A stretch of 64,000 nt of DNA from Selaginella moellendorffii (Eukaryota; Plantae; Lycopodiophyta): positions 3,313,746 through 3,377,745 of the forward strand of contig NW_003314263.1 in NCBI RefSeq assembly GCF_000143415.4, written 5' to 3'. Shown piece by piece: positions 569 to 39,702 of this stretch (positions are counted from its first letter, which is position 1; every line of letters begins with the position of its first letter). The notes beneath the pieces are model-generated. The model worked only from the letters and a program-made list of their open reading frames with translations. It did no database searches and was not told the DNA's origin. Position numbers and translations under genes: made by a program.

Positions 569-2030
569 ATGGCTTCTTCAGGAATTTTCTTCTTTGTTCT
601 TTTTGTTCTCTATGTTTCTACAGGTATCATCTATCGTCCTTTGAGTGCATCTTTGATGTCATATAAATCTCTGTTTTGTGTGTGTAGTCGCTGCCCAAAA
701 CGTGCATTTTGGTTATGGAGTTTATCTTCCCACCACGGATCTGGGATCTCCGTTGAGGACCCTGAGGCCCATTTTCAACGAGAGAGCTAACGAATTCCTG
801 CTGACCGAGAACTATACCTCTGTCAAAAACAACCATGCCCACACTAGTAACAACGAAGAGCTCTACAAATCAGTAAGCCATGCAACAGTGGCAGTTCCTA
901 ATCTGATCGGTTGATCACAGTTTGGAGTTACGTTTGGGATGAACGTTCCTATAAAAGTTCTGCAGCTTAACATCGAGGCATCGTTCAACAAGATTGCGGG
1001 GAGCAAGACAAGCATCAGGACCACCTCCGTGTTTGTGGAGTCATACAACCAGAGGATCTACCTCCGGGACCATAGAAGGGCCATCCAAACCCTCCCACTC
1101 AACTCTGATTTCCTCAGTGACTTGCGCAACCTTCCCGAGCCACCCAGCTCCGACAGCGCTTGGGGGCCATACCAATCCTTCTTGAACAAGTGGGGAACGC
1201 ACTACGTGGCCGAGATGTTCCACGGCTCATGGCTGCGCCAGTGGACCGTGGCCTCCTCCACGGCGACGTTCACCCAGCGCCAAATGCAGGCCAAAGCCTG
1301 TGCCAAGCTCACCGGCCTCAAGGGAGTCCTCCCCAACATGGAGGGCTGCGCGGGGATCACTCTTGAGGAGATGCGCGCCGCGGAGGGGATCAACACGCAA
1401 GACACTCGAGAGGCCCGGGGTGGATCGTCCGCCACCGTCTCGCAGCTGCTCTCGGGTGACATAACCAACGATCTCATCCGGAAGTTCATCGAGGAGGGAG
1501 CCACGAGCAAGGAAGCAGTACGCTACGGCTTCTTTCCAGTGTGGGTGCCCGTCTTGTCTCAGTACATGTCGTCCGCGTCCAAGGAGTGGAGAGTGGCGAC
1601 GGCGCTCCAGGCTTACTATGAAGGCTTCCTCGCCTTCAAGTGTCCCCTGGACCGGCTCAACACACCCGCGACTGTCTTGCAGCAGTTTCGGAGGCTCAGC
1701 AATGGCAAGTATCAGTGCGTTCGCCAGTGCCAGGGCTGCAGGCTTGACAAGGATTGCAACCTTAGTGGTGTATCTGGATGCTACTGCTACGGTAACTCGT
1801 GCATCAACGCTCTGGGACCGGATGGCCGGGCTCAGGTTCAGCGGCAGAAGGATAACCTCGACCGTAATGTGCTGCCTAACAGGTCGTGTGAGTACAAGTT
1901 TCCTCAGTGCCGCTGCAACACTAAATCCAAAGAGCCGAACTGTGGTGCTGACAACATGATTCCGATATGGGACCAGGGTCAGAACAGCATTGCGATCGAT
2001 TCAGACATCCTTCTTTATGACGAAGAATGA
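569..2030 (+). CDS. Secreted MACPF/perforin-like protein with Cys-rich C-terminal domain (~449 aa; exons 569-623, 688-872, 921-2030)
   Basis: ATG 569 gives hydrophobic leader MASSGIFFFVLFVLYVST. GT-AG introns 624-687 and 873-920 join three ORF pieces in frame. The MACPF signature appears as YQSFLNKWGTHYVAEMFHGS, and the C-terminal ~130 aa are Cys-rich. Confidence 0.85.
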
Positions 2031-2859: not shown

Positions 2860-2959
2860 NNNNNNNNNNNNNNNNNNNNNNNNNNNNNNNNNNNNNNNNN
2901 NNNNNNNNNNNNNNNNNNNNNNNNNNNNNNNNNNNNNNNNNNNNNNNNNNNNNNNNNNN
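2860..2959. other. Assembly gap (100 N)
   Basis: Run of Ns. Confidence 1.
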
Positions 2960-3176: not shown

Positions 3177-4475
3177 TTAAATTCCTTCCTTTTGTATCGT
3201 CTTTTGGATTTCACAAATGGTGGTGATTGCTAGAAAGAGTCCAGTTCCAGAGCCAATCACTCCCATCGTATTTGCAGCCACGGAAACAACACCAATGCCA
3301 AACCCTCCAAGCGCTGCTGCCACTGGAATGTATCGGTCCAGCTCCTTTCTGGTGTTGGAGCTCCTGTGTCCTGGAATTATCACGCCTTGTTCTTTCCACT
3401 TCCTCGCTATATCCTTGGAAGATGACCCTGACAATTCAAGCCACGCCTTAGAGATTAGAGTGCTAGACACCACCGTGAAGACTGAGTAAATGAGAAAATG
3501 GAATGGCTCTTGGATCACGCTCTCTGGTGGATGAAAAACCTTGTAAATCATTCCTCCCAAAGCACCCATTGTAAAATTTTCGTAACCAAATACGTGACCC
3601 AGGCCTTCGTAAACCTTGCCCACGCTAGCTGCAAGCTGAGTTAAAAACATGATTGGAGTCGTCGCCGTGTAGAACAGCCGGATTGAATGATTCATATAAT
3701 CGCCCCTTCTGTTTGTCACTCTGATGATCATGTTGAGAGACTGAAGATATAATATCCCACAAATCATAAGAATCGTCAAGACCATTGTCCAGAGATTTGG
3801 GAGGTAGTTTCTGAAGAATGACTGGCGCACTGTCCTCATGTTGAAGCTGGATATCAACCCTCGGATCAATGCTACAACCGAGCCTTCAGGTTCGTTGACT
3901 CCTCTAAAGTTGGCGGTGATAGGGCTAAACGCGTGCCAAATCACGTCCTCACAAACGCTGCATGCAGTGAAAATGGAAATTGCAGACTGCCCAACACCAT
4001 ATCCCTTTTCTAAAACTTCGTCCATGTAGATTAGCATCAAAACTGCTAGAACCAGCTGCAAGATCACCAATAGCGAGCCAATCATACCAATTGGCCCATA
4101 CACTCCCCCAACAATGTTTAAGATTGCCAACACCACTGTAAAACACATCCCCGCCATCTTTTGTAGCTTGTTGATGGAGTCCTTCTCTTTGATGCAAATA
4201 ATGTTTCCACCAACTAAAAGTTGGATTGCCATACTTGCTGTTGCAATCGGAGCAACACCCAAATCCATCAGTGTTCTCTGACTTGCGTGCTCCGGGGAGA
4301 TCCCAAAGAGCGGCAATCTACTGCTAATCATGTAAACAAACACACACAAGCCTGTGTTTAAGATCCTTGTTTCCAGTGGGATCAACGACTTTGGACTGTC
4401 AATCTCCACACTGAAAAGCTTGGTAGCCCCTCTAAACAATCCACTCGCAGCTCCCTTCATCGTGGACAAAGCCAT
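3177..4475 (-). CDS. SEC61A: Divergent intronless Sec61-alpha/SecY translocon subunit paralog (432 aa), plug region deleted
   Basis: Motifs LPLFGI, TLMDLGVAPI, DEVLEKGYG, AFSPIT, LPNL, IRLFYT, SGSSSKDIA, GHR..ELDRYIPVAAALGG and IGSGTGLFLA are collinear with Sec61-alpha. Single open ORF. Confidence 0.9.
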   Translation of the reverse strand: MALSTMKGAASGLFRGATKLFSVEIDSPKSLIPLETRILNTGLCVFVYMISSRLPLFGISPEHASQRTLMDLGVAPIATASMAIQLLVGGNIICIKEKDSINKLQKMAGMCFTVVLAILNIVGGVYGPIGMIGSLLVILQLVLAVLMLIYMDEVLEKGYGVGQSAISIFTACSVCEDVIWHAFSPITANFRGVNEPEGSVVALIRGLISSFNMRTVRQSFFRNYLPNLWTMVLTILMICGILYLQSLNMIIRVTNRRGDYMNHSIRLFYTATTPIMFLTQLAASVGKVYEGLGHVFGYENFTMGALGGMIYKVFHPPESVIQEPFHFLIYSVFTVVSSTLISKAWLELSGSSSKDIARKWKEQGVIIPGHRSSNTRKELDRYIPVAAALGGFGIGVVSVAANTMGVIGSGTGLFLAITTICEIQKTIQKEGI

Positions 4476-4899
4476 GACTTCCTATTTAGGTTTTTCTTTG
4501 AATCAGTCCATATTTATAGAATAACACCAACTACGTTTTATACAAAAGGCTTAGTGAGTACCGTTTTACTTAGGAAAAGGGAGATAAGAATATTTGGGTA
4601 CAGAATCCCCAAATATTCTAACTTGTATTGGATGCAAGATATTATTGTTTCCCAGAGGTTTTCCTCAAACCGGAGTGATGACATATTAATCCCAGCAAGA
4701 AAAACCGTCGGTTTGGTCGGGCAGATGATATTACAGAAATGAACTGCACATTGAGTAAAAAATGGAGACAAGGAAACAAAGCTTAGCAGACATCTGCGAT
4801 CTTTTCTGTCGTGATCAGAAGACACCTCTGATCACCAAAAGATCTAAACCTGCCCAACGAAGCATATTTAGTATCATGGTACAAGCAATTCGCGAGCTC

Positions 4900-6479: not shown

Positions 6480-8545
6480 CTTTCCCCGTTTATTATTTGA
6501 AAAATCGAATGCTTTGAAGTCCTATATCGAGCGATCATTTTCTATTCACATTGTAATATAAACAGATCCATCAAGTTCTACCAATTATTTTCGGAAAAAA
6601 ATCCAGCTTTGAGATCATCTTTCGTGCTATCAATAATCTCGCGAACATCCTTCTCAGTCCAATCAAGAGCACCATCTCCAGCAACGATTCGGATCAAACT
6701 CTGGAAGAAGAGCTTGGTATGATCGCTAGAACCAGATCCAGGAACTCAGCGTAAACTCCTTTCGAGGCACGTAAAGCATCCCATGGACGTGCTCCCCGTC
6801 TGGATACGTAGCACTCGAGTCCTAGCAATGAGTCCTAGCAGGGGCGATGAGAACTTCGACAAAATGCTCAAGGATGGCACTCGTTTCATCGTTTCATTGC
6901 AAAAATCGCAACTTTGATCAGCGAAAAGAAACGTTATACTCACCTCCACACTTTCACAACTCGATTGTTCCCCACTTCGACAATGCCGAAAAGAAAATAC
7001 ATATATCCAGTTGTTGCCCCAAGCTTGCAGAAAGATTGGAGCAAAACGACCACTTCTCATATTTGCACTGCCATCCTTCTTGGAAACACAAGCTCCAGCT
7101 TGATGTAGCAGTATTCTGGTTAAAGAGTTAGCATGCTAAACGTTCCAAACTTCAATGTACGCTCCACTCTCAAAACTGTAACAAGATTGCTTAATCCTTG
7201 AACTCGTCCGTCACGAACCAAGACCCAGAAGCCATGCTCGGTTTGAGTTTCATCAGAGTCATCTGCGTCCTGCAAAAACATTTAAGACAAGACGGAAAAG
7301 ATGAAGGAAAATGTGGAAAGAATAAGACTTATTTCAGCGTCAACTAGTAAGCTCTCAAGATGATCATCATCGCCTCCAGCTAACCTTGGTGTTCCACTTT
7401 GGTTAATAACGCATTATCACTTCATAAACTGAGGTGCCGTTGTAATATTGGGTTTTGTGATTTTGTAAAGGTCCGGAGTTAATGCTCCTTTTGGGATACA
7501 AAAGGAAACGCATGAATTCAATAGAATTGTCGAGTCTCACACTGCAGCGTCCAGTGATACGTCAATAATCTCTTCCATGGCAGCACGCAAAGCATCTGAA
7601 TCCATGGATTGTCCCAATCTTGTCACCAGCAATAGGATTCGCCAGTTCCTCAAGCAGTCGAACGAATGGATTGTTTGCAATAAAACAACTGTGGTATTTG
7701 CTGGGAAGGACATCAATCTTCCGCTGCTTACTTCTTAGATCGCAACAAGATACTACATGATCGACCTCATCAGTAGCATTCAAAGACGAAGCTGGATACT
7801 TACCAAGAAATGCAGCTTTGAGATCATCTTTGAATCTTTTCCTGGCATTGATAATGTTGCAAACTTCTTCTCGGTCCAAGCTAGAGCACTAACGATTCGG
7901 ATCAAGCTCTGAACGAAGAGCTTCGAGTGATCGCATAAACCGGAGCCACGCATTTTCACGTTGGGCAGCATAAACTCCTCGCGAGGCAAGTACAACAGAC
8001 CATGGATGTATTCCCCATTTGGATACGTAGCAGACGAGTCCTTTGAATACTTCGCAGAAAAGTATGCATTTTTGTAACTTTTTGTTGAAGTTATACTTCT
8101 CGTTGGTACAGCAAGAGAATCAATCAGAATGACAACCAAAAATCTACTCACCTTTGCACTTTTACAGCCGGATTATTCGTCAGCTCTAACCAAGCCAAAG
8201 AAGAAATACACACCATACATCCAATCGTATTTGCCCCAAGACTGCAAAAATGGCTGCAAAAAGATTGATCAAGCTGCAGGAAACAATAGCTGTACTACCT
8301 GAATACAAAGCCACGAGACAATCCTCCAATATGTTCTTCGAAGGCCCAGACTTTTTTTGAGATCTCCATCGCCTGTGTTCATGGACAAGCTTTCAAACAA
8401 GAAAAGTAAGACAACACTCTCTCAAAATCTCCAAACGAGCTACCTGAGAATCCTACAAGTTTTCTCTTGCAAGAACCAATTTTTTCTTGGGCAGCAAACT
8501 GCGGAAAAGAAAAAATGGAAGACTTAGAGGCAGAGCCAACCATGA
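6480..8545 (-). pseudogene. Two tandem degenerate copies of an unidentified gene
   Basis: DSSATYPDGEHVHGMLYVPRKEF (~6750-6825) matches DSSATYPNGEYIHGLLYLPREEF (~7970-8045). Flanking segments are also similar, with many stops and frameshifts. Confidence 0.55.
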
Positions 8546-9179
8546 AAAAGGGCTCTTAAATTTCTTCGGGCGAAAATTCTTCATCGTGGAACAATGCCAC
8601 ATACTTTATCAGGTCCACAGAAATATGGGAACGGTTGCATGAACTGCATGGCACGTTGATGCTCACTCGCATGCAATGCTGGATGATTGGTGAGGATGTT
8701 CCTTCACGAGATTGTAGAGCGGTCGAATTGTCATGGCCAGCGACATGGAGCCGGCAAAGGAATCCAATCCCACAAACCAAAGCATGTAGCGAGATGGACG
8801 ACGTCACTGAATCCATCGACTTCGCATGTGCGCTCCAAAAATGTTTGACGGATAGCGCAATATACGTACTCATTTGATCATTTTATTCGGCTAGCTCTCA
8901 CTGTTCTTCTTCTTTTTTTTCCTATTTCTTTCAAGAAGACGAATTTTCTTGTACAAATCATCGGGAAAAGAAGAAATGGAGACTATTTCTCATTGATTAT
9001 CTCAAGAGAAATACGGAAATATAATAAGCTTAAGTGAAAAACCTTTTACAAAATTTTAAGCTCATCTGATTCTCAAACCTTGAGCCTCGCAGCCTTGCAG
9101 CCCCAGGAACATCTTCAGTGTCAAGTTTGAATAGCTCATCCGCCTTCAGGTCAACATATTCTGACGCAAGAACTATGGT

Positions 9180-9545
9180 GTTGCAGTTGGAGCAGCTGGA
9201 TACCTGGACTATCGTCGATGGTGCCTCCATTTACATTGAGAGTCTGGGACCAATTCTCCAGTGCGTTTCTGACGTGGAATCCAATCACCATGAGTTTGCG
9301 AAACAGGGAATCTATGTGTATATGGAGCCCTGGACGCTGCAGGATGCACCAAGGCAGTTGGCTTGAACATCATGGATATGCGAGATCAATATCCCTACTC
9401 CGGAGGAGTTCCCAGATACATCTTTTACTTGGACACAAGCAGACTCAAGAGCCTCATCAACAACGCTTTTGCGAATGTCAGCAACGTCTCCGAGTTATTG
9501 AAGAATCCTGATAGCAAGTTTTCCAACAAGATTTTACATTATAGA
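9180..9545 (+). pseudogene. Crinkler/RHS-type (CR) NTPase-domain fragment
   Basis: TWTIVDG...HEFAKQGIYVYMEPWTL and, after a frameshift, SGGVPRYIF...SNKILHY resemble the conserved YMPxWS / GGxPRY / SHxxxH motifs of CRN/RHS-like proteins. Confidence 0.55.
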
Positions 9546-11154
9546 TCAGTTCTTTGCTTTTACTTCTTTCGATACATGCTCTTCTTTTGCAGGTCTCAGC
9601 ATCCACAAGAAATGGAGGCATCTAGATATAAGGGTGGAAATTAAAAGAGGTTTAATAAAACTCCCTTTACCCAAAACTTTAAACACACATTTCATCCCTT
9701 AAGCTTGTAAAAAAAGGAAATATTTTAGGTTTTCACTTGTCCTTTCAGCAGAGAAGTCAACAAAGATGCTAAACAAGAGTAGCAAAGTGTACAAGGAGCT
9801 CCATCTTCTCCAAAACTACCCATTGTTTTGGTTCTCATCCTCCTAGCAGAGTGGCTTCCAGTTTGGAAGTGTGGATGAGTTGAAGCTGTATTTGAAACAG
9901 CAACACCCAACTTGTATAAAGTGCAATTAAGGTGAGTGTGGCAACTTTGACTACTTTAACAATGACATCGGCCAGCCAAGATATTGCTGCAGTCTGTGCA
10001 AGAAAAAATTTACCTATCGTGGAAAAACAAGACCCACCTACATGAAGTGGCCAAGATCAAGCAGCACTGAGGAAGTTAGCATGGCACATGAGAACAAAAA
10101 CTCAAGCACACTCCAGTTGAAGACAAGATGAGAAAGGGTTTGCTAGTCCACGAAAGTCAAGCGAAGCAGAGTGGTCAACAGGCCGATAAAGCTGGGGCAG
10201 CAGACATAGAAGATTTTGACATGGATGACCTGGAAGTGGCTAGAATCATGGCACTGGTCGAGGAGAATGAAGTCCCAGACGAGGAGGAACACATCCCTCT
10301 TGTGTTCCCTGAGGTGGCAGAAATTGTAGTGAGTGACAGAGAGATGACTGAAATTCTATTGTCAAATCTCGAGGATGTGGATGATGAGGAGATGCTAGAT
10401 CTTGTGCTTGAGGAGGTTTTGGAGCAGCCAGAACACAAGGAGGGGTTGGCAAAAATTCAAATTGGCAATGGGGAAACGAGCCAAATCCTCCAAAAGAATG
10501 TGGACAATGAGGATCTTGTGCTTGAGGGGGATTCTCAGGAGGAGTAGGTAGAGGCAATGGAGGGGGACATTTATTTTGCTCTCGAGCTTGAACAGGATCT
10601 CCAGGCCGAAGAAGATAAGCGAAAGGAGGAATCTATAATGCTCTGGAAGATTGAATTGGAGAAAGTTAAATGTAGTGGTATTTTTAATTTCAAAACAAAT
10701 CCGTAGGGTAGTATTCTTTGTTGATTGAATCAACAATCAAATCAACATAATTAAGATAGAAAAATTATAAAAAAAAAAAATACTTCCATGTTTGGTGTAA
10801 AATTTATTAATAGTATTAAATTGATTCACAACAAGAATTTTCCACTAGTCCTGAAATCGTGCCCCAGAAGGAGGCTTTCTGCAAGGTACTTAATTCTTCT
10901 CACCTAGATTTTCTTCTTTTTCATGTTGCAGACTGTCGGAAATATGTATCAACAGCTGTCCGAGGAACTTAGCTGGATCAAGGTTGAAAAGGAGTTGCTT
11001 CATCAGAGCTGCGAGAGATCCAAGCAGGAGGTAAATCGAAGCTGGTTAAGGCAGACTTTTTTTGTGATTCAGTTTAAAACACTTGACTTGAGAGCAGGAC
11101 TGACTTGAAAGATGGCCTACCAGCCGGGACCTGCAAATACATGCTGCGCAGGTG

Positions 11155-11905
11155 CAAACTCCTGCCATGAAGAATCATAATCATAAAAAAGTAAGCAGTG
11201 GCAGAGTAAACACTAACCTTCACAGAGAGATATTCTTCGTAGTGGGAGGTGTTCACGAAGCATGAAACCATGATCTGCATTAAAAGAGAAAAAGAAGAAT
11301 TAGTAGAACACGAAGATGGTTTCTACCATAAGAGACTGGTTTCACGGGTCAATGTTGTCAAAGAACAGTTTTCGATGCAACCGTCTAGAGCCCTGCAAAA
11401 TCTCAAGTTCTAGGAATCATAAGAAGAAATATCAAGATATCTACCTGCATATTCCGATGATCGCAACACAGGCTACGGAAGAATGTACTTCGTTCGACTC
11501 TTGTCCCGTTCACGTCGCTGATTGAAACACACCACTGTCAGAGCTACAAAGAAAAGAAATTCATGAACTATATGTCTCCACCTAGAAGATATTGCGACAC
11601 AGAAATTTCCTTGGGAAATTCCTTGCGAAGGCCGCGGCATTTCGACAATCTCACGAGCTGGTTGCAGCGACAAAGAATCCTGCCAAGCACCAATTACCAC
11701 AAAACAAGCCCGAGAAACCTAGCTTCAGGCTTCAGCCTACTCGTGGACAGAAGGAAGAGCCCAGCCCCCGGTCTCGATGGAATTTGTACGCTTACACCGG
11801 CGGCAACTCCTAATCCATGAGAATTCGAGCTGAGAGAGGAGTAGCGGCATTGTAAACTCTCGCGTCATACCTTCATCGCGCCATGGAAGAATGGAACCCT
11901 AAATT
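11155..11905 (-). pseudogene. Internally deleted, intron-retaining copy of the MSL2/3 gene
   Basis: Nucleotide matches to 58350-59130 and 57160-57375, e.g. [24 protein letters not shown] and IMVSCFVNTSHYEEYLSVK. Confidence 0.85.
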
Positions 11906-12050
11906 AACAGCCGTCAGATCATTTTCATCCGCGCCCTCCACTGCTTTACCGTTGGGGTTTCTCCAGCCGTCAGATCAAGCGCATCGTGACCGTCCGATCC
12001 CAACATATAAGCTTGCGAGCGGGGCATTTGTGCTTCTTTGCCGGGCAGCT

Positions 12051-12527
12051 ATGGATGTTAGGGATGGCGATGGCGATGGCGATCGCGGCGACGGTGAAGG
12101 AGAGGCCTGTCCAATCTGTTCCAGCGGCATCTCGGACGTCCACACGGACTGCGGCCACTGGTTTTGTCTAGAGTGCTTGGTGGAATGGGTGGAGAGCGCG
12201 CCATCGATCAGGTCATGCTCCACGGCCAGTACCGAATGGACTTGCCCGCTGTGCCGCCACGCGCTCGAGGCATTCGATTTCGATGAGCGATGGAGCGATG
12301 GCACCGACCGCGAGGAGCTCCGGCAGCGATTACGCGACTACCAGCAGGAAATATCCGAGCGTAAGCGCGACCGCGACCGCCGACGAACCCGACGACGATT
12401 ACGACGATCCCGACGACGATCCGCTGTTGTGGAGGACGAGAACGATGCGGATTGCTACCCGTGCTTGTTGTTCATCAGCGCGCTCCTCCTCTGGTTTCTT
12501 CTCATTGCGACAGGAATTCTAGGCTAG
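12051..12527 (+). CDS. C3HC4 RING-finger E3 ligase with C-terminal TM anchor, RNF170-like (158 aa from ATG 12051)
   Basis: CPIC-x9-CGHWFCLEC...CPLCR, then LRDYQQEIS, an Arg-rich stretch and a hydrophobic tail. TATA-like catataag at ~12004. Confidence 0.8.
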   Translation: MDVRDGDGDGDRGDGEGEACPICSSGISDVHTDCGHWFCLECLVEWVESAPSIRSCSTASTEWTCPLCRHALEAFDFDERWSDGTDREELRQRLRDYQQEISERKRDRDRRRTRRRLRRSRRRSAVVEDENDADCYPCLLFISALLLWFLLIATGILG

Positions 12528-14917: not shown

Positions 14918-16177
14918 TATGGTTGGTCCCGACCACGTTCTGCTGAAATCTCGACCGCCGCCGAACGCAGTCGGACAGCTCCTTTCGGTAATTCCGTTCA
15001 GCGAAAAAAATGGTGATCGCGCTCGCAGGGGCTAGATTTCTGATGCTGCTGCAGCTATTGCCATCACCACTACATCTTCACTGCTTTGCTGTTCTCCTGC
15101 TGCTATGGAGTGATCCATCCATCCACAAATGCCCAGCCTAGCAAGCCTACATAGAATCCGACGAAGAGGGCTATTGTAAGCAACTAAATTTTCCATTCTA
15201 CTTTAGTCACTTAACCACACCTCTGACCACTTGGAGGAGTCTCATTCACAACCTCCAGAAGTCCAATCCAGGACTTGGGACTTACTAGCCCCGAGAATGG
15301 CATCCATGCCACTCAACATTTGCACTTGGTCCAAGTGCTCCACGTGTCCGATCCCATGACCGACACTCAAAGGTACCACCGACATAGCAGCCCGTTACGC
15401 TAAGGCCATGCCCAATCACCTTTGCCACACTGGTAGTCCAATACCACTTGCATCACAGTCTTGGCTCTCCAAGACTGGGCCATCTGTCCACGAGTGGTCA
15501 TCCTAGATCCACTCCTTAGCATCCTTAGGATGCCCACAAACCGGGGGAATCGCCTTCCCCAAAGTCCCTTTGTCAGTTCCTACCAAGTCCCTTTCTGCCC
15601 CTGGCCGTGTTTGCCAACACTGCCACTGGATCGAGGCCCACAGGCTCGACCACTAAGTCCCACGGTCCTCTGGGACTTCCTCACCACACGACTGTGTCCT
15701 TGGTCACTACCCCAGAGGACTGCTCCTCTTCCTTTCCACAGTCTAGGCCTTTGGGACAACATTTCGGAACACCGTGGCCTTACGCGAGCCACCTGGGTAC
15801 TCTCCCCGCCTTTCACCTTTAGGTGCTCTAGCCATGGGCTTAGAGCGAGGTTTCGTTGAGCCACGCCTGGTATCCAAGTAGGTAGTGCCACCCACACTTG
15901 GACTGGGAGCATCGGCCAGTCGATCTCCCGGGGGAACTAGAGCCGGCTCTTGAACACTTCACCAAGCTACCCTGCTTGTCGGTCCGTGTTCACTCTAGTC
16001 TTGGACTTCCCAGTGGGCAGCTCATCACCCAACACTGGGTCCGGCCTTCCTGGGCCAAACTGGCCTTTCCTGGCCAAACTGGCTCCACTGCAGTCCTCCC
16101 CCTACTATACTTTTGGAGCTCACCAAACCCCCCAGGGTCTGGGAGACGAACGCTTTGGGCTTTCACCCTCTCAGGCT

Positions 16178-16750
16178 CCGGACTCGGACTCGGACTCGGA
16201 CTCGGACTTGGACTCGGATTCGGACTCGGACTCGGGCTCGGGCTCGGTCTCGGCCTCGGCCTCGGTCTCGGTCTCGGTCCCGATCTCGGTCTCGGTCTCG
16301 GTCTCGGTCCCGGTCTCGGTCTCGACTTCGGACTCCATCTCGGACTCCATCTCGGACTCCATCTCGGACTCCATCTCGGACTCCATCTCGGGTCCATCTC
16401 GGGTCCATCTCGGACTCCATCTCGGACTCCATCTCGGGTCCATCTCGGACTCCATCTCGGACTCCATTTCGGGTCCATCTCGGGTCCACCTCGGACTCCA
16501 TCTCGGACTCCATCTCGGACTCCATCTCGGGTCCATCTCGGACTCCATTTCGGGTCCATCTCGGACTCCATCTCGGACTCCATTTCGGGTCCATCTCGGG
16601 TCCACCTTGGACTCCATCTTGGACTCCATTTCGGGTCCATCTCGGGTCCACCTCGGACTCCATCTCGAGTCCATCTCGGACTCCACTTCGGACTCCAACT
16701 CGGGTCCATCTCGGACTCCACTTCGGACTCCAACTCGAGTCCATCTCGGA
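16178..16750. repeat. LTR-internal minisatellite (6-bp CTCGGA/CTCGGT and 12-bp CTCCATCTCGGA units)
   Basis: Seen directly. Confidence 0.95.
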
Positions 16751-19700
16751 CACTTCCACGTGTCATGTGTTGGTCCTTTTGGGTCCCTTTTTGGAGCCTC
16801 GCTTTTTGCTCGCTTCGTGCTCGTTCCTCGAGCACTTCTTTGGGAGTTCCACTCCCACTCTTGACTTTTCAAGTCGGAAACGTGTTACGCTCGTTTGGCT
16901 CTCGCTTCAGCCACTACCACGTGGCACCCTTTCCGGCTCCACTTTGGGGCCTAGGGATTTTGTGTCTCACAACTCCACCACCCATAGACGAAGTTCGATG
17001 TCCTCATCGAACAGTAAACCATTTTGTAAAGTAACACTCGCATGTGTTACCATTTCCATCCTTGGCACCTAGCCAATATTTGTCAATGGTTTGACATTGA
17101 AGGCTCACCATGCCTTTTGCATATGCCTCAATGGTTTGACACCAAAGGCTCACCATGCCTTGCCTATCCTCTAAGGAGGGTAGTCTCCCCAACTTAGAGA
17201 CTGATTGGACCACATGTAGTGGTTCTCTCCTTTTATTGGTTTAGTTCTCGCTAAACCTCTTAGAGACCCTTCTCTAAGTCAATCCCACTTACTCCTTCTT
17301 GAGTAGTCTTAATTTCCTTCTATTGAATGTTTGCACCTTGGAACTTTTACTCTTTTGACTTTTGGAAGTCAATTTCCTAGGTGTCTCCAACACCTTGCAT
17401 TGCACAGATCGTGCGACTCCACTTCCCTATCTTAGGAAGTTCGTTACTTGAGGGCACCATCATCCTCTCTTCTATTTCGTGCCATCTTAGGCACTAAGTT
17501 CCATTTATCACACTTTGTGCTAGGGTTGTCCATCGCCCTATCATTTGGCTACCTTACCACTCCCTCCCTTGGAGCTTCCACTTTCGTCAAATCGGAGCAA
17601 TTCGGAATCCATCCCTGGAAACACACTTCCTTTCCCGCAATTTGTTAGTGTCCAACACATTAGTGTTCCTCGCCTAACTTTGTCACTTGGATTCCTTCCC
17701 AGGGATTCCACGGCCCTATCTTGGCCACTCATCTTTTGCTCCTATCCGTTGATTGTTGCACCAAGCAACATCGAATCTCTACCTCCCTCCTTGAGGTATT
17801 CTTTTGATTCCATAGCAAAGGCTCTACTTTGCCAAGACTAGAGTGTTCACCCCTAGTAAGTCTCTTTTAGCATCTTCTGCTGTGGGCTCTATCCTCGACC
17901 CAACTTTGTGACCCTCTCATGGGTCTCTTTAGAGATTACTTTCCTTGGACACACTATGCCATCGCAATGACATAGCTCATTTCCCTAAGGTGCTTTTCCC
18001 ACTTGGTCACTTTGACCAAGCCACACCATCATCAATAGTTCAAATCAACACTTTGAACTAGGAACCTTATTCCTTAACCCAAACAAGGACCTTGTCCTTA
18101 TTTAGCCACAAGATCACCTAGTGATCTCACCTTGGCACCTTAACAAGTTTGCCAATAGGTGCTAGGTCTTCCAGACCTTTAACTTGTTAACTACGACCCC
18201 GGGGGCATCCCCCACACTTGGCGGTGCGCCCAAGCCAGCCCTTCCGGCCAAGGGTTCATAGCAACTGAGATTAGGTGTCCCCATCTCACTCACCACGACC
18301 TTGGTGCCACTTGCACCAAAGCGTTCAAGTTAGATATGCCGAGCTTTCACACTAAGCAATCTAACCGTGCATCACGACTCCGAGGCATCCTTCGCTTGGC
18401 GGTGTGCCCAAACCAGTCTCCCCACTGAGAGTCCATGACCACCGAAATATGAGTGTCCTCATATTCCAAACCATCACCACGCCCTAGTGATTTGGGACTC
18501 GAACCCAAGCACTAGAGGGTCGGGACTCGAACCCAACCTCCGTATATGCATCTACGGACGGCATCACACTAGATGCCTGGTGTGACTCCCCACGCCGGTG
18601 CACCAACCTATTTTTAAAGCGCGCTATAGATCACAGCTTAGGAACCTAGTTCCTCCACATTGCCAAGTCCTCTCACTTGACATGTCTGTGATCATGCATG
18701 GACTCCTCCATGCTTGGCCCCATGGCCCACCCTTTTTGAAGTTATCACCTCAACTAGGGTATTTGTTCCCCCGACGTGCCAATCTTGCTTGGCAAGTCCT
18801 CCGACCACTGTAACATGGTTCCTGCATAAGCGTGAAAGTCCTTGACCATCGACTTTCGTTCAAAGCCCTCTCTTTGAACACTCGGGAACTACTTCCCTAA
18901 CCTTGATAGCCTTGCCTCATGGCAAGCTTCAAGACCACGCTTCTGCTGCGCCACTCTGATTTCGCGCATTCCATGAACCATTTACACTTGGCCTTTCTAG
19001 GTACTACGCTACCTAGAATCGTCTTTGGGAACCTTGAAGGAACTCTGTCCCTCAGCTTGCTAAGGCCTCCCCTTTCGCAAGCTTTATAGTTGCCATATAG
19101 TCTAACATGGACAATTCCATATTTTAGACTCTCCATGGCATCACGGTTGCTAGCAACAACATCCTCGAGCACCCTCTTGATTCTCCACTCCCAACTTTCA
19201 TAACCACTGTTGGATATGCCCTTTGATTTCTATGGTTCAGTTCCATCCCAATACTACTTGCCTTTGGCTTCACACCTTTCCTTCGGTCATTCTCCTCCAG
19301 ACCAGGAGGATAGCTTTGCACTTTCTATCATGCCTTAGCAAGTATTCTTAGGGATGAACCTACCCAATAGCCCAGGGAGTGGTTCCTCAATCCGGGTATG
19401 CTCAGCTTATAATCCCACACACTAGGATTACATTGTTGCTTATGGGCCTTTACATGCCCATCACTAGCCTTGCCAAAATTCCATTTTTGGCTTTGTCCAA
19501 CTTGGGTAGACAGTCCTCTCCTGTCTCCGCAACCTTGGACATTTGGATAGCACCTTCTATCCATCATTCGCTAGGGACTTAGTCCCTTGGGCTTTATCCA
19601 TTGCCCTCGCGACATCAAACACCACCTTCTAGTGTTCTAGAGTGTCCGGGTGTCCCAATGATGGCTTTCTTGACAATGAGTATTTCCTTTTATGACATTG

Positions 19701-22083
19701 ACTTACTATATCGCAACACAAGCAACTTATCCCCCGTAAGGGTATATCCAACTTCCTTATGCTACTAAGAAGTCTTGGGTAGCTACCTTCTACCCGTTTA
19801 ACCAGTTATTTTGCACCTCTTGCTTAGTTGCCTCATAGTTGTCAAGTCCTACAACTCATTGCTTGGTGCTTTCACACCTCCATCATTATTTGGGTCACCA
19901 CACTCCAACTGCATGCTCTGCAGCTTAGGCTATGCCATTCCCATTTCCGTTGGGATTCCTTTGGCAAGGGGTTCTCATGAACCCACCAACATAGCCTCAA
20001 GTTATCACACCTCGGCACATTTGGTGTCTCCACATCATCGGCTCCACGAGCCTACCTCTATGACATTTCCCCTTCGTGTCTAAGTCTTTGCCAAGACCAA
20101 CACCGCTCTTTCTCATGCCAACCATCTGTTAGCACTGCCCCATAGAGGTCACACACAACTTTATGTCAAAGTTGTTTTCTTCTGGGAACACCTTTCCCAT
20201 AACTTTAGCATGGCATATTTTGCCATCGATGAGATACCCTCTGTTCTCATCCTTGGATCTTATGATCCCCCCCCCATCCTTTGTGGGGTACAACACACCT
20301 CAGTCCAAATGCTTCCATCAGTCCTTTTAGAACCATCCCTTGACTCTACTTGAGTCATCCAGCAGTTTTGGACTTGGTTGATCCACAGACCCGTAAGGTC
20401 CTACTTGTGAGGCACTAGCTCACTGGAATACACTTCTTGCATTCCTGTCCTACTCAAAAGGGCTATTTTCACAAGTGTTACTCCGACACTTGATTTTGTT
20501 CTCTGGGGGCAACTTTTGCCCCTTAGGACTACTTGTCCATGCGATGGGAATACCACTCATCTCTAAGTACACCCCCCAACTCCTTGGGTTGTTCCAGCAT
20601 TTATTAAAGGTAGCCCCGGCTACCATTTCAAGGACTTGAGTCCTCTCCCGTATTTGACCTTCCACGGTCATTACCTTTGGTCTCACATTCATGAGCACCA
20701 ACCTCAACTATATGAGGATAATCTTGTGACTCCTTTATTGTTTTGGAGTCTCTATCTTTCCCGTGATCCCAACTTTAGTTGTTTACCACAACAACCTTAG
20801 CCAATTTGCTGAGACAAATGCTCATCCGGATCACATCCTCAACTCAATGAGGAAAACCTTGCACTGTTCCCAAGATCCCAAAGTCGTTCCATTATTGGCC
20901 CTTTTCTATCCACCACCTCGTCTACAAGTTCACACATGAACTGTAATGGAGAGCCATGTCTTCCCGACTTGCTACTCCTCAAGGATAGGCCCACTCCTCG
21001 GACCTTCCGATGCCAACACTAGTGGTGATATATTTGAGCACCAATAAAAGTCGGACTAAGGAACAGCTCCGATACCAAATTGTAAGCAACTAAATTTTCC
21101 ATTCTACTTTAGTCACTTAACCACACCTCTGACCACTTGGAGGAGTCTCATTCACAACCTCCATAAGTCCAATCCAGGACTTGGGACTTGCTAGCCCCGA
21201 GAATGGCATCTATGCCACTCAACATTTGCACTTGGTCCAAGTGCTCCACGTGTCCGATCCCATGACCGACACTCAAAGGTACCACCGACATAGCAGCCCG
21301 TTACGCTAAGGCCATGCCCAATCACCTTTGCCACACTGGTAGTCCAATACCACTTGCATCACAGTCTTGGCTCTCCAAGACTGGGCCATTTGTCCACGAG
21401 TGGTCATCCTAGATCCACTCCTTAGCATCCTTAGGATGCCCACAAACCGGGGGAATCGCCTTCCCCAAAGTCCCTTTGTCAGTTCCTACCAAGTCCCTTT
21501 CTGCCCCTGGCCGTGTTTGCCAACACTGCCACTGGATCGAGGCCCACAAGCCCGACCACTAAGTCCCACGGTCCTCTGGGACTTCCTCACCACACGACTG
21601 TGTCCTTGGTCACTACCCCAGAGGACTGCTCCTCTTCCTTTCCACAGTCTAGGCCTTTGGGACAACATTTCGGAACACCGTGGCCTTACGCGAGCCACCT
21701 GGGTACTCTCCCCGCCTTTCACCTTTAGGTGCTCTAGCCATGGGCTTAGAGCGAGGTTTCGTTGAGCCACGCCTGGTATCCAAGTAGGTAGTGCCACCCA
21801 CACTTGGACTGGGAGCATCGGCCAGTCGATCTCCCGGGGGAACTAGAGCCGGCTCTTGAACACTTCACCAAGCTACCCTGCTTGTCGGTCCGTGTTCACT
21901 CTAGTCTTGGACTTCCCAGTGGGCAGCTCATCACCCAACACTGGGTCCGGCCTTCCTGGGCCAAACTGGCCTTTCCTGGCCAAACTGGCTCCACTGCAGT
22001 CCTCCCCCTACTATACTTTTGGAGCTCACCAAACCCCCCAGGGTCTGGGAGACGAACGCTTTGGGCTTTCACCCTCTCAGGCT

Positions 22084-22581
22084 CCGGACTCGGACTCGGA
22101 CTCGGACTCGGATTCGGACTCGGACTCGGGCTCGGGCTCGGTCTCGGCCTCGGCCTCGGTCTCAGCCTCGGCCTCGGTCTCGGTCTCGGTCCCGATCTCG
22201 GTCTCGGTCTCGGTCTCGGTCCCGGTCTCGGTCCCGGTCTCGGTCTCGACTTCGGACTCCATCTCGGACTCCATCTCGGACTCCATCTCGGACTCCATCT
22301 CGGGTCCATCTCGGGTCCATCTCGGACTCCATCTCGGACTCCATCTCGGACTCCATCTCGGGTCCATCTCGGACTCCATTTCGGGTCCATCTCGGACTCC
22401 ATCTCGGACTCCATTTCGGGTCCATCTCGGGTCCACCTCGGACTCCATCTTGGACTCCATTTCGGGTCCATCTCGGGTCCACCTCGGACTCCATCTCGAG
22501 TCCATCTCGGACTCCACTTCGGACTCCAACTCGGGTCCATCTCAGACTCCACTTCAGACTCCAACTCGAGTCCATCTCGGA
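22084..22581. repeat. Same minisatellite in the other LTR, with different unit counts
   Basis: Seen directly. Confidence 0.95.
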
Positions 22582-23332
22582 CACTTCCACGTGTCATGTG
22601 TTGGTCCTTTTGGGTCCCTTTTTGGAGCCTCGCTTTTTGCTCGCTTCGTGCTCGTTCCTCAAGCACTTCTTTGGGAGTTCCACTCCCACTCTTGACTTTT
22701 CAAGTCGGAGCTTTTGGTCCAAACGTGTTACGCTCGTTTGGCTCTCACTTCAGCCACTACCACGTGGCACCCTTTCCGGCTCCACTTTGGGGCCCAGGGA
22801 TTTTGTGTCTCACAGCTATAGCCTATAGGAGCTGCGTGTGTACCGAGCTCTACAGGGCAACACTCTCCAGTCGGTCGGCCTCTGCTTTCGATTGAGCGTG
22901 GAGCAGTTCACTGGGGCCTCACAAATTGCTTAGTCCGCGACGCTTGAAATTTTTGCCATAAAATGGAAATTACGATTCCAGTGATTTCAGAGATTTGATT
23001 CTAGCAATTCTAGCAATTCTGGCACAATTGAGCAATGGTGCCTAATTGGGCATGGTCCCATGTTACCAAGCTCACTCCTTATGCTTCCGGCAAAAAAGCT
23101 GGGTGTTGGAAATGTAATTATTGTGGAAAAATGTATGGTAGTCTGCCAAAATGAATCAAGGTGCATTTCACTAAAATTTTTAGGTATGATATTGAAGTAT
23201 GTAATGTTTTAAATGTTCCTCTTCATGTTCAGAACTAAGTTTGCCGAATGTTTGTGGAGCAAATCACAAATGCCCTTTTGTCTTTACCTTCTATAGCAAA
23301 TCTATAGAGTAAGCATTTTGATGGGGCATCTG

Positions 23333-26474: not shown

Positions 26475-29400
26475 ATGGCAAAGGCAGGGTGTAAAAGAAC
26501 CAAGGTAGAGATGGAACCTCCTCCAGAGCTGGAACCTCCGATTGAACAAAAAGCTATGAATGAAGAATCCTTGCATGAGGAGGACTCTAATGAGGAAGCT
26601 TCCAAACAGGAGTCCGATAGTGAGGTTCAATCATTCAATGCTCAATTGGATGTTCTAGAAGGACAATTCACACAGACAAATGCCTTGTTGGAGACTCTTG
26701 TACGCAAGTTAAAGCATGACGAGAAGTGAAAGAAAAAGAAAAATATTACAAATGCTGGCAACGTAGAAGGCATGGACCCTTGGGCAGGGACTGAGGCAAA
26801 ATCGAACAAGATCAAACAAACTAAACTGGAATTAGTTCCTCAAGCAGTTCCTAAGTACAAACCAAAGCCCCCACCGGTCTTCAAGGGAGTGAACGAGTAT
26901 AAGGTGGTGGAGGATTGGTTTATGATATGGAGGATTACTTTCGAGCATTGTAGTTACCGAGCTCAGAGAAAGTCCCATATGCTAAACCATACATGGCAGA
27001 TAATGTTAAGTCTTAGTGGAGAATAACAAAGGCCAACAAAGGACTGGTGGCCACTTATGAAATGATGAAGGCGAGAATCTATGCAACTTATGTTCCTCCA
27101 AATGCTACTCTGCACCTAAGGGATGAAAAGAGTAGGTTGAAGCAGACTAGAACCATTCAAGAGTATGTGAATGTGTTTATGGCAAAGAGGATACTTGTCA
27201 CAAACATGGGTCATATGGATGCATTCCATGCTTTCATATTAGGCTTGCAGACCTAAGCTCGAAACGAGGCAATGCGTTGGAACTTGACTAACTACAAGGA
27301 AGCATTGAATGCAACTATTAAGGTGCATTTCAATAATAACCTGCGAAAGGGGAACACAACGGGGTTGGGATCCACATTTAGCAAAGGAACTAAACTAAGG
27401 GGGACATATGGCAAAGGGAAATTCAAGAAGAGTTTCTCTAAGAATGAGTCCTCAAGGTTTTGGAAAGGCAGATCTAGTAGCTATTAAGCAAGTATATAGA
27501 GGAGTCAAACAAAAAGGGACAACCCCATGGATAATAAAATCAAATCAGCTAGTAGCATGGGAAACAACATATACTTTAACTGCAATGAAGCAGGACACTT
27601 TTTGAGAGAATGTCCTTACCCGAAGAAGGCCAAAGTCAATATGGCTATTAAGTCAAGTGAAAACAAAATTGAGGTACGTGATCCAGTCTCTAGCTCAAAG
27701 TTACTCATTACATGAGCAACTTTGGTAGAGAGTTATTCGCGACATCTATTAGCCCTTCAAGGGAAGCTCGGAAGTAACTTTGTTAAAATCCTTATTGACA
27801 TAAGTGTTTTAGATAATTTTGTAGCTGCAGACATAGCCCAGCAAGCTGGACTAATGGTGCAATAGCTATATGAAAGAACTATAGAGTTTTTTCAAGGTAG
27901 CCAAATCACCGATGAAGTACTTCGACAAACAAGAGTCAAAGTAGGGACATGGAAAGTAAACATGGATTTCACCGTATTGGACATGGGGGGATTTGACATG
28001 ATCTTTAGGATGCATTAGTTTAATCAGTTTGTGGTAGCCTTGCATGGACAAGATAGGAACCTTGTGGTATTGGTGAATGCCTGGGGAGAACGATCTAGGG
28101 TGGAGGCCCAAGATCAAAGATAGGGCAATGTAAGGCCAAAGACTCCTGCTTGAATCTGATGTCCACGAGAGGACAACTCACTAAAAGAACCAAAGTAGCA
28201 TTTTTGTGCTTACTCTCAGTGAAGAGTGACAAAAAGATAGAAACATAAAAAGTACCTTTAGTGATTTAGCAGGTGTTGGACCAATTTCAAAATACCATGT
28301 CGGAGGACTTATTGGCAGGGTTACCCCCCGATAATCGATAGAACATAAAATTGAGTTAGTCGAGGGTATTAAGGCGATGGTTCATCCCCCCTATCATTTG
28401 AACGAAAAGGAACTCAAGGAGCTCAAGTGCCAATTAAAAGAGTTGGTGAATAAAGGGTATATTAGGTTGAACAAGTTGTTATATAGGGCGTTAGTGTTAT
28501 TTGTGAAAAAGAAAGATGGATCTATGCACATGTGCATAGATCACCGGTTGCTCAATAGGTGTACAAAGAAGAACAAGTACCCTTTATCAATGATTGAGGA
28601 CCTATTTGATAAGTTGGGAAAGGCAAAATACTTCTCGAGGATTGACCTAAGGTTAGGATACTACCAGATCAAGGTAGCAAAGGAAGATGTCGAGAAGACA
28701 ACCTGTCAGACAAAATATGGGAGTTTTGAGTTTCTAGTGATGCCCTTTAGGCTGTGCAATGCGCTAGCAATGTTTTCAGTGCTGATGAACCATATTTTTG
28801 TACCCTATCTGGATCACTTCATGGTTGTTTATATTGATGACATCCTAATTTATAACGAAACGCTAAAGGAGCATGCCGAACATTTGACAAAGGTGTTTAA
28901 AAAACTAAGGGAATATAAATTGTATGCTAAAGAGAGCACATGTGACTTTGCTCAACAAGAGGTAAAGTTTCTCGGGCATGTGGTGGGTAAGAACGGGCTT
29001 AAGGTGGACCCTGAAAAGGTCTATGCAATCCAAGAATGGGAGTGACTATTGAATATACATGAGTTAAGCGCATTTTTAGGGCTATGCAACTACTACTGAA
29101 AATTTATCAAATACTATTCGAGAGTACCCCTACCTTTAACGAACGAAACAAAAAAAGGGAAGATGGTATGGACAGTGAAATGCCATCTCACATTTGTCCA
29201 CCTCAAAGGGAAGTTGAGGAAGACTCCCATGTTGGCATTACCAGACTTTGGTAAGGACTTTGAGGTAGAAACAAACACTTTAGACTTTGCGTTAGGCATA
29301 GGTTTGAAACAAGATAACCATCCGGTGACATTCTTCTCAAAGAAGTTGGACAAAGCTCAGCGAAAGTGGCCTGCCCACGAGAAGGAATTATTTGCAGTGG

Positions 29401-30775
29401 TCAAGGCACTCAAAGAGTGGCGACACTACCTTAGGAGACACTTTAAAGTTTACACAGATAATGTGGCAAGAAAACACTTGTTGTCACAGCTCGACCTAAA
29501 AGGAAAACAAAGTCGGTGGGTCAATGCTTTGGCTGAGTTCAATTGTGAGATTCTGTATAAACTTGGGAAGAGTCAAAAAGCAAGTTTAAAGTTGGCGATA
29601 TCTAGCATGATAGCAACCTTTTGGGATAATGTACAGATAGCATATGAGAATGATTGTCTAGCACAAGAAGTGTTGCTAAGGAACCAAGAGGCACAGGATG
29701 CTCACCAAAAAGGTGAGTTGCGGACAAAAGAAAAAATAGGTTATGCAAAATGCAATGGACTCATCTATTATAAACAAATGAGGGTGTATGTTCCAAAAGG
29801 GGAACTACGGAAGGTAGCATTAGAAGAGTGTCATGATAAACCTCTTGCGGGATATGGTGGAGTGCCCAAGACGATGGGCTTACTCAAGAGGAAGTATCAC
29901 TGGCTAGACATGGCTAAAGACGTCCAAGACTATGTAAAGATATGTCCAACATATCAATAAGTCAAAGCCATGACTAAGACTAGTGGGGGCTTGTTACAAA
30001 GCATTCTAATTCCAGATTGTCCGTGAAAATATCTTACAATGGACTTCATCACGAAACTCCCTCAAAGAAAGGGGTTTGATACGATATACGTAGTGGTGGA
30101 TTAGTTTTTGAAAAATGATACATTTCATACCCACCACAACAAAAGTGGATGCAAAAGGTGTGGCAAAACTATTCTTCGAACAAATGGTTCGAGTGTAGGG
30201 AAGGTCAAAAGAGATTATCTTAGATCGAAATAAGATCTTCACTAATAAAGGCAAACTAAATATGCGAACCAAAAGTGCTGGAACATAGAGTTTCAACCTA
30301 GGAAGAAGGTGTGGCTGAGTACCAAGATCCTAAGGTTACCAAGTGGGATCAGCTAGAAGTTGACCCAAAGGTAAAAATGTATGTATTCCTAAAAATGAAT
30401 TAACCTTGAGTTCCTTAAACAAGTTCACAGGGCCTTACGAGATTGAGGCTCAAATTGGTAAAGTGGCTTACCACCTCTAACTTCCTCAAAAGATGGGGAA
30501 TATGCACTATATGTTCCATGTGAACTTACTCAAGTTATACTTTGAGGATCTGTTTCACAAAGACCAAGTAAGACCTTTACCTGAGGTTATCCAAGAGGAA
30601 GAGGAATACGAAATCGAGCCCATCCTCAATGCATGCAAAAACAAGTGACAAGGACGTGAAGTGAGGGAGTTCTATGTGAAGTGGAAAGGATTTCTACACT
30701 GCGAAACAACATGGGAACCAAAGGAGAACTTAGCGAACGTGCAAAATCTAGTGGAGGAATTTTTGCAACGTATAA
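26475..30775 (+). pseudogene. gag-pol pseudogene (gag, PR, RT 28377-29045, RNase H/IN 29163-30300, chromodomain ~30600-30770)
   Basis: ORF-track fragments with canonical motifs, broken by stops and frameshifts. Confidence 0.9.
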
Positions 30776-38679: not shown

Positions 38680-39702
38680 TTGAAAGAGGTCATCCAGCAT
38701 CTCCAGGTCGATCACCAGCATCTAGATGACAACGATTACGCTTCTCTCCTCCGGAAATGCATCGAATTCAAAGCTCTCACTGAGGGCCGCGACCTCCACA
38801 CCCTCATCTCCAAGGGAGAGTACGGACAGAGCTCCTACCTTTGCAATCTCCTCACCCAGCTGTACGGGAAATGCGGCCACCTCCATGCCGCGAGGGGAAT
38901 ATTCGACTCCCTGGGTGAGAGGAGGAACGTTTATTCCTGGAATATCATGATCATGGCATATGCCCAGAACCGTCTGGAGGAGGCCAAGGAGATCTATGAC
39001 CAGTCGCCACAAAGGACCATGGTGACGTATAACACAATGGTCACGGCATATTCCCAGAACGGGCATCTCCAGTGTGTCAAGGCCTTGTTTGATGGGATGG
39101 AGCAGCAAGACATTGTGTCATGGAACGCCATGCTAGCACCATATGCCCAGAGCAGGCACGACACCCAGACCGTCGATCTCTTCGAGTCCATGGACATCGA
39201 CGGCGTCACGCCCAACCACGTGTCACTCATCTCTGCACTGGACGCATGCAGCATGGTCGGGGAGCTGCGGCTGGCAGACACACTGTACGATGCAGCGCTG
39301 ACTCTTGGGTGTATGGGCGACTACAAGGTGTGTATGGCACTTGTAAACGCGTATGGCTGGTGTGGCAGCCTGGGCAATGCCAAGTGGATATTTGACCCCC
39401 TAAGAGTGATGAGATTACAGCCTGGAATCCTGTATCTGGTGGGCAAGAACCTCAGCGATGCCAAATCACTAGTTTTTTTCCATGCCCGCGCGCAATCACA
39501 TCTCCTGGAACATCATGATGGTCGCATTTGGGCGAAGTGGATTCCATTGCCAAGCCCTGGATTGCTTCTGGCTAATGGATCTCAATGGAATCTCCCCGGA
39601 CAGCGCCACTTTTGTGAATCTGTTGGATTTGTGCTCCACATTGGAAGAGGGCAAGACCATACATGCCTGCACAGAGGAGAGTGGTTATGCAACCCATGGT
39701 GA
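38680..39702 (+). pseudogene. PLS-class pentatricopeptide repeat (PPR) gene, frameshifted and truncated
   Basis: YASLLRKC, NLLTQLYGKCGHL..ARGIFD, RNVYSWNIMIMAYAQN and DIVSWNAML. Frame change near 39400-39480 into RNHISWNIMMVAFG. Confidence 0.85.

Follow-up and report, generated by a model that had tools for sequence, protein, structure and literature searches.

An intronless Sec61-alpha paralog without a plug helix in Selaginella moellendorffii

We noted, in a 64,000-nucleotide stretch of the genome of the lycophyte Selaginella moellendorffii (RefSeq assembly GCF_000143415.4, contig NW_003314263.1, positions 3,313,746 to 3,377,745 of the forward strand; hereafter the window), a gene for a strongly diverged Sec61-alpha from which the plug helix (transmembrane helix, TM, 2a) is missing. 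The gene, here called paralog A, is one of three intronless derivatives of Sec61-alpha in this plant (A, B and C), each a single open reading frame (ORF), and its substitution pattern points to a real, selectively maintained gene that has been under purifying selection since the loss of the plug. Sec61-alpha is highly conserved and in plants usually intron-containing, and its plug seals the idle pore.

An earlier reading of the DNA letters alone (the sequence-only reading) had proposed an intact Sec61-alpha ORF of 432 amino acids (aa) at window positions 3177-4475, and the ORF list indeed gives such a frame on the minus strand, with an ATG start and no internal stops. Pfam SecY (PF00344) matches residues 68-422 over profile positions 1-304 of 306 (1.6e-45; 156.2 bits, with a gathering cut-off of 32.2). 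The best solved relatives, found by phmmer in the Protein Data Bank (PDB), are mammalian Sec61-alpha isoform 1/human SEC61A1 (1e-77, residues 23-426), with fungal Sec61 next, and yeast Ssh1 and archaeal SecY far behind. Paralog A is only 37-42% identical to canonical Sec61-alpha and 37-40% identical to the proteins of Glycine, Arabidopsis, Sphagnum and Klebsormidium, whereas those four are 85-90% identical to each other and streptophyte Sec61-alpha proteins 85-97%. With this low identity and the single uninterrupted frame, the gene is, as had been claimed, an intronless and fast-evolved paralog.

The exact 432-aa product is absent from the public protein sets queried. These hold a 410-aa partial model, identical to the product of paralog A, on the window's own 4.46-Mb scaffold GL377567.1, and a 351-aa partial model (SELMODRAFT_419988), 99% identical to it, on scaffold GL377609.1.

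Loss of the plug and retention of the fold

In the phmmer alignment of paralog A with the human protein a 12-residue gap falls exactly at the human plug segment. In a MAFFT alignment with 55 homologues (59 sequences in total) the gap relative to plant Sec61-alpha is 13 residues long and lies between H62 and A63, that is, at window position 4290|4289. The Pfam plug domain (PF10559, Plug_translocon) gave no match in A, B or C even at E<=10; in the controls it was found in the canonical Glycine protein (1.2e-17) and in diverged copies from Eleusine (5.8e-09) and Corchorus (5.9e-05). Of 222 homologues having both plug flanks, only Selaginella A and B have no residue in any of the 13 plug columns, and each of the other 218 such homologues keeps at least 10 of the 13. 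An AlphaFold2 model of paralog A, built from the MAFFT alignment, has only a three-residue turn (63-65, assigned by DSSP) between helices 33-52 and 74-88. The gap, the missing domain match and the model without a plug helix all agree with the sequence-only reading, which had put the loss at about 12 residues.

On both haplotypes, paralog B lacks even more residues at this site, which rules out an assembly artefact as the source of the deletion in the A/B lineage. For A itself the deletion is read from one haplotype, since an assembly gap covers the plug site in its second allele. At locus L002, which carries this allele, a run of Ns of about 3 kb (7100-10000) removes its first ~240 nucleotides (nt), plug site included. 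Five mismatches, one of them creating a TGA, lie within 30 nt beside the gap edge (L002:9965-10000) and are probably poor sequence rather than a real stop. Diverged Sec61-alpha copies occur in other plants too: those of Eleusine coracana (P0023) and Corchorus olitorius (P0014) share 52% and 80% identity with canonical Glycine Sec61-alpha and, unlike the Selaginella family, keep the Pfam plug domain.

Outside the plug, the model shows the fold of an ordinary translocon, with ten TM helices, in two halves of five, and a hairpin in loop 6/7 (mean predicted local distance difference test score, pLDDT, 90.1; predicted template modelling score, pTM, 0.86). Foldseek returned 67 PDB matches at E<=0.001, of which the best 50 are all Sec61/SecY chains, and the best is closed mammalian Sec61 (7tm3_1, TMq 0.91). 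Using a residue map in which vertebrate numbering was taken through a bird Sec61A1, we found that the pore ring consists of V73, A77, I165, T169, M275 and L414 (human I81, V85, I179, I183, I292 and L449) and is apolar. The small Ala at the V85 position is unusual, since nearly all homologues have Val or Ile there and Ala is outside the three commonest residues among the 55 homologues. The polar cluster of the lateral gate (human T86, Q127 and N300) is reduced in A to its Thr (T78), the other two positions having become Leu115 and Ser283 (Table 1).

In the cytosolic loop 6/7, strands 247-253 and 259-265 form the hairpin. The claim that loop 8/9 is kept was upheld, as G368-H369-R370 (human G403-H404-R405) and KEL-RYIP are present; the loop reads PGHRSSNTRKELDRYIP in A and PGHRESNLQKELNRYIP in the plant protein. 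The lumenal TM7-8 loop had been described as shortened, and the MAFFT indel table gives it about 17 residues fewer, made up of losses of 16 or 17 and of 3 residues and two single-residue insertions; a helix at residues 300-313 persists in the model of this loop. Smaller losses fall in the TM2/3 loop (5 residues), loop 3/4 (3), loop 6/7 (2) and the C-tail (8).

Family, selection and origin

Paralog A belongs to a small family, specific to Selaginella, whose members are fast-evolved Sec61-alpha derivatives without introns. Copy B, 86% identical to A, lies ~60 kb away on the same scaffold and is intact on the window's haplotype (SELMODRAFT_78131). Its alleles were located at L004:2986-4269 (GL377567.1, intact) and L003:10001-11284 (GL377609.1, with two stops), the number of synonymous substitutions per synonymous site (dS) between them being 0.076. 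Copy C (444 aa, 61% identical to A) is on other scaffolds, and both of its alleles are intact. On one haplotype (L001, GL377608.1) the RefSeq models of C, P0107 and P0317, are truncated (153 aa with a foreign C-terminus, and 221 aa); on the other the RefSeq model is full-length, with 444 aa.

The three proteins have in common the N-terminus MALS(T/K)MKG and indels in loops 2/3, 3/4, 6/7 and 7/8 and in the C-tail, and differ in how much of the plug region is missing: 3 residues (YWM) in C, 13 in A and 17 in B. This graded series reflects a stepwise loss of the plug within the family. In the AlphaFold2 model of C the remnant of the plug is a five-residue helix, with pLDDT <50 at residues 63-73. 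The smaller indels and the Leu/Ser changes of the lateral gate are common to A and C and are thus old.

We found that the family is under purifying selection. By the Nei-Gojobori method the ratio of non-synonymous to synonymous substitution rates (omega) is 0.35 for A and B (dS 0.20-0.21) and 0.22 for A and C (dS about 1.1, saturated). Between alleles it is 0.18 for B, 0.19 for C and 0.24 for A; the last value, for which differences beside the L002 assembly gap were left out, is based on five synonymous and four non-synonymous differences and is weak when taken alone (p 0.036). A maximum-likelihood (ML) codon model (GY+F3X4) fitted to six sequences gave omega 0.295 (likelihood ratio test, LRT, against omega=1: 133, p 7e-31), and for the plug-less A/B clade only, omega 0.379 (LRT 30.4, p 3.5e-8). 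On the A branch itself, polarised with C by parsimony, omega is about 0.45 (p 0.006). Of the five complete sequences available from A, B and C, four have intact frames, allele A2 being cut by the assembly gap. The proposal that paralog A is retained and not decaying therefore gains support from omega values of 0.3-0.4 for the tree as a whole and for the A/B clade; these, like the values between alleles, are significantly below 1. A pseudogene, with a disrupted frame or omega of about 1, was considered and rejected on the same intact frame and the same two codon-model fits.

The claim that paralog A is a retrocopy fared less well. A, B and C are each a single uninterrupted ORF. Downstream of the stop of A there is no poly(A) run, and a target-site duplication was not found. 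The paralogs also have a promoter block in common. In an alignment of the 300 nt upstream of A and of both alleles of B and of C, only the last ~46 nt before the ATG could be matched, and within them a TATA box, TATAAATA, is invariant across A, B and C; downstream of the genes, the 3' flanks could not be aligned between paralogs. The promoter block common to all three suggests that the family multiplied by DNA duplication, which carried the promoter along. At most one ancient retroposition would then be needed, one that would predate the family and have left no surviving hallmark.

The source of the family is probably the plant's own Sec61-alpha, which is the best reading of the sequence comparisons. 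A free, quick ML tree recovers the family as monophyletic (support 100), with a very long stem branch (1.32 substitutions per site), and places it among long-branched eukaryotes, at a position without resolution. A tree constrained to unite the family with streptophyte Sec61-alpha has a log-likelihood 16 units better than this free quick tree (p-AU 0.86), and in an exhaustive HMMER search of 1.84 billion representatives the best matches outside the family are plant Sec61-alpha proteins at 42-45% identity. Both results point to descent from the plant protein. Nothing was found in that search between the family and these canonical plant proteins. Plant-only signature states did not discriminate, for A shares 11 of 38 and some non-plant sequences up to 14. 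Canonical Sec61-alpha was listed by protein searches and a cluster look-up in many plants, including the lycophyte Diphasiastrum, in which only the canonical form was found; none of the listed proteins was named as Selaginella.

Possible functions of a plug-less channel

Compared with canonical Sec61-alpha, paralog A retains the SecY domain, the ten-TM fold, the apolar pore ring, the Arg-Gly of loop 6/7 and the Gly-His-Arg of loop 8/9. It differs in having no plug, a loop 7 about 17 residues shorter, the Leu/Ser pair at the gate, a C-tail shorter by 8 residues and no introns. The basic and glycine residues of both ribosome-docking loops are thus present. We tentatively favour, at somewhat less than an even chance, the explanation that A is a specialised alpha subunit of an alternative, co-translational translocon that opens more easily than the ordinary one. 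The sequence-only reading had suggested a specialised or permissive translocon, a leak channel or an inhibitor-resistant variant. An easily opened alpha subunit would still pair with the small subunits Sec61-beta and Sec61-gamma and dock ribosomes at the endoplasmic reticulum (ER). Its vertical gate would be held by the pore ring alone, as in viable laboratory mutants from which the plug was deleted; a gate held in this way would open more easily and could lower the demand on the signal sequence. A leakier resting state and the loss of the pocket bound by known Sec61 inhibitors would be side effects or, alternatively, the selected trait.

Engineered channels provide the closest parallels. Yeast and E. 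coli survive deletion of the plug with hardly any loss of function, but the channel becomes permeable to ions and easier to open (PMC2585858). Paralog A resembles these constructs (yeast sec61; E. coli and M. jannaschii SecY; PDB 2YXQ/2YXR) in that the TM2a segment is gone and the rest is in place, and its model aligns to 2yxr and 2yxq in Foldseek with TMq 0.78-0.79. They are, however, laboratory deletions in otherwise wild-type channels, whereas the loss in A is natural, has persisted under purifying selection and comes together with a truncation of loop 7 and changes at the lateral gate. Yeast sec61 delta-L7 is viable and keeps co-translational membrane integration but loses post-translational import and soluble ER-associated degradation (ERAD) (PMC3897919); in A only part of loop 7 is missing, and naturally. 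In our literature search no paper was found on these gene identifiers or on a natural plug-less Sec61/SecY.

For an alternative translocon that is specialised and bound to ribosomes, yeast Ssh1 can serve as a model: it is a diverged Sec61-alpha homologue, not itself essential, that yeast has in addition to its essential alpha subunit. To our knowledge Ssh1 has not been described as plug-less. Orthology of A with Ssh1 was rejected, as Ssh1 (2ww9_A) matches A at 1e-33, compared with 2e-64 for yeast Sec61 and 1e-77 for mammalian Sec61.

Mutations of the prl type in plug, gate and pore relax client selectivity (10.1101/2022.08.11.503542). Possible, though doubtful, is a more specific proposal, that A forms a natural 'prl-type' translocon that docks ribosomes without plug or polar latch and with a short loop 7, and so offers special clients a low-threshold, probably inhibitor-insensitive route into the ER. 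If this is true, no natural plug-less Sec61/SecY would have been shown to function before it. The plug is among the most conserved parts of SecY/Sec61, and the arguments about its role have come mainly from deletions made in the laboratory. A plug-less channel under purifying selection, together with a graded series of losses (3, 13 and 17 residues) in one genome, would make a ready-made system in which to learn what the plug is truly needed for (sealing, gating threshold or client selection) and how an unplugged ER channel is tolerated. It could also reveal whether the pocket between plug and lateral gate is dispensable, a question that bears on Sec61 inhibitors.

Several observations weigh against a functional, easily opened translocon. 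An omega of 0.3-0.4 is a constraint far weaker than is usual for Sec61-alpha. On the other haplotype copy B has two in-frame stops, Leu codons 229 and 238 each having become a stop codon, which makes the family at least partly dispensable. Orthologs in species other than S. moellendorffii were found neither in a 90%-cluster search nor in the exhaustive HMMER search, and no transcript-derived (Logan) copies of A, B or C are listed in the protein collections. Finally, in crystal structures of engineered plug deletions, neighbouring residues form substitute, unstable plugs (PMC2585858), and the polar linker SPEHASQR that remains in A might likewise still partly seal the pore.

Of the other explanations, we consider it unlikely, though it can co-exist with the easily opened translocon, that A is chiefly an inhibitor-insensitive back-up, whose lost pocket would let secretion continue in the presence of natural-product Sec61 inhibitors from microbes, fungi or plants. 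All seven inhibitors tested bind in one pocket, formed by a partly open lateral gate and the closed plug, and hold the plug shut, and yeast N302L and Q129L confer resistance to Sec61 inhibitors (10.1101/2022.08.11.503542). Paralog A is plug-less, with Leu replacing Q127/Q129 and Ser replacing N300/N302, as this explanation would have it. However, resistance already arises from single point mutations and does not call for an entire remodelled paralog; there is no known inhibitor-producing partner or pathogen here, and the only link to defence is through neighbouring MACPF genes, which may be coincidence.

It is improbable that A transports no polypeptides and serves as a leak or solute channel, its unplugged pore being a regulated leak for ER Ca2+ or small molecules. 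Sec61 is an accepted ER Ca2+ leak channel, and plug-deleted SecY passes ions and water (PMC2585858). Mammalian loop 7 bears a BiP site that limits Ca2+ leak, and leak is raised by V67G in the plug, V85D in the pore ring and Y344H in the BiP site (PMC9582130); paralog A has no plug, and has Ala77 in place of V85 and Val312 in place of Y344. Yet the docking residues of loops 6/7 and 8/9 and TM8-TM10 are among the best conserved parts of the family, which is unexpected for a pure ion leak, and the pore ring is still apolar.

A silent or dying retrocopy, an unexpressed relic whose frame has by chance not yet been hit, is improbable as well. It would account for the absence of introns, of listed transcript-derived copies and of any but partial public models (351 aa and 410 aa), and for the two stops in one allele of the sister copy. 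Chance does not readily explain, however, why four of five complete sequences are intact at a dS of about 0.2 (A-B) and about 1.1 (A-C), why omega falls significantly short of 1 for the entire tree, for the A/B clade and in the allele comparisons and is about 0.45 on the A branch (p 0.006), and why the TATA promoter block is kept across the paralogs. Were the gene unexpressed, it would be only a curiosity of Selaginella gene-family turnover. Least probable of those we weighed is a channel neofunctionalised for another pathway or membrane, such as retrotranslocation in ERAD or insertion of a special client class: the very long family stem (1.32 substitutions per site) and the remodelling of both lumenal gating elements would fit it, but neither a targeting signal nor an additional domain or partner gene was seen, and in its fold and docking loops the protein matches an ordinary ER translocon.

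Features of the locus and its surroundings

The elements of paralog A and its immediate flanks are given in Table 1.

Table 1. Window coordinates of paralog A, its structural elements and flanking features
Feature	Position	Strand	Basis
Conserved core promoter/5' leader block; invariant TATAAATA at 4511-4518, 36-43 nt upstream of ATG	4476..4521	-	Flank alignment
Paralog A, complete intronless coding sequence (CDS), Sec61-alpha/SecY family	3177..4475	-	ORF list, Pfam, PDB phmmer, AlphaFold2, Foldseek
TM1, model helix, residues 33-52	4320..4379	-	AlphaFold2/DSSP
Residual TM1-TM2b linker SPEHASQR (residues 59-66), in place of ~21-residue plug segment	4278..4301	-	Gap relative to human/plant, no PF10559, DSSP
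TM2b, model helix, residues 74-88; bears retained lateral-gate T78 and pore-ring V73/A77	4212..4256	-	AlphaFold2/DSSP, residue map
Leu115 codon, lateral-gate polar position in TM3 (human Q127, plant E); Leu in all three paralogs	4131..4133	-	Alignment map
Cytosolic loop 6/7 beta-hairpin, residues 247-265; R256-G257 (human R273-G274) kept, 2 residues fewer	3681..3737	-	DSSP, residue map, indels
Ser283 codon, lateral-gate polar position in TM7 (human N300); Ser in all three paralogs	3627..3629	-	Alignment map
Lumenal loop 7, residues 296-322, ~17 shorter than canonical; human Y344 is Val312	3510..3590	-	Indel table, residue map
Cytosolic loop 8/9, residues 363-380; plant-like G368-H369-R370 and KEL-RYIP kept	3336..3389	-	Residue map
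Assembly gap of 100 N, ~220 nt downstream of paralog A stop, outside CDS	2860..2959	.	Sequence read

Just downstream of paralog A, and tail-to-tail with it, lie MACPF (perforin-like) genes on both haplotypes: one at window 569-2030 (+), where Pfam MACPF matches 939-2030 at 1.3e-09, and two copies at L002:13105-14577 and L002:18964-20436. We saw no link between these genes and the Sec61 paralog.

Further into the window, 15100-17100 and 21000-22900 are direct repeats, 98-99% identical and about 5.9 kb apart, each holding a 12-nt minisatellite, TCGGACTCCATC, in about 30-36 copies with all six frames open; they may be a pair of long terminal repeats. Pieces of a Gypsy-type retrotransposon (reverse transcriptase, RNase H and an integrase zinc-binding domain) are found at 28377-29960 (+). 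The neighbouring genes are otherwise ordinary and include a RING-finger E3 ligase at 11883-12527 (+), a PPR protein at 38680-39702 (+) and, at 53344-55567 (-), exons of an MRS2-like magnesium transporter.

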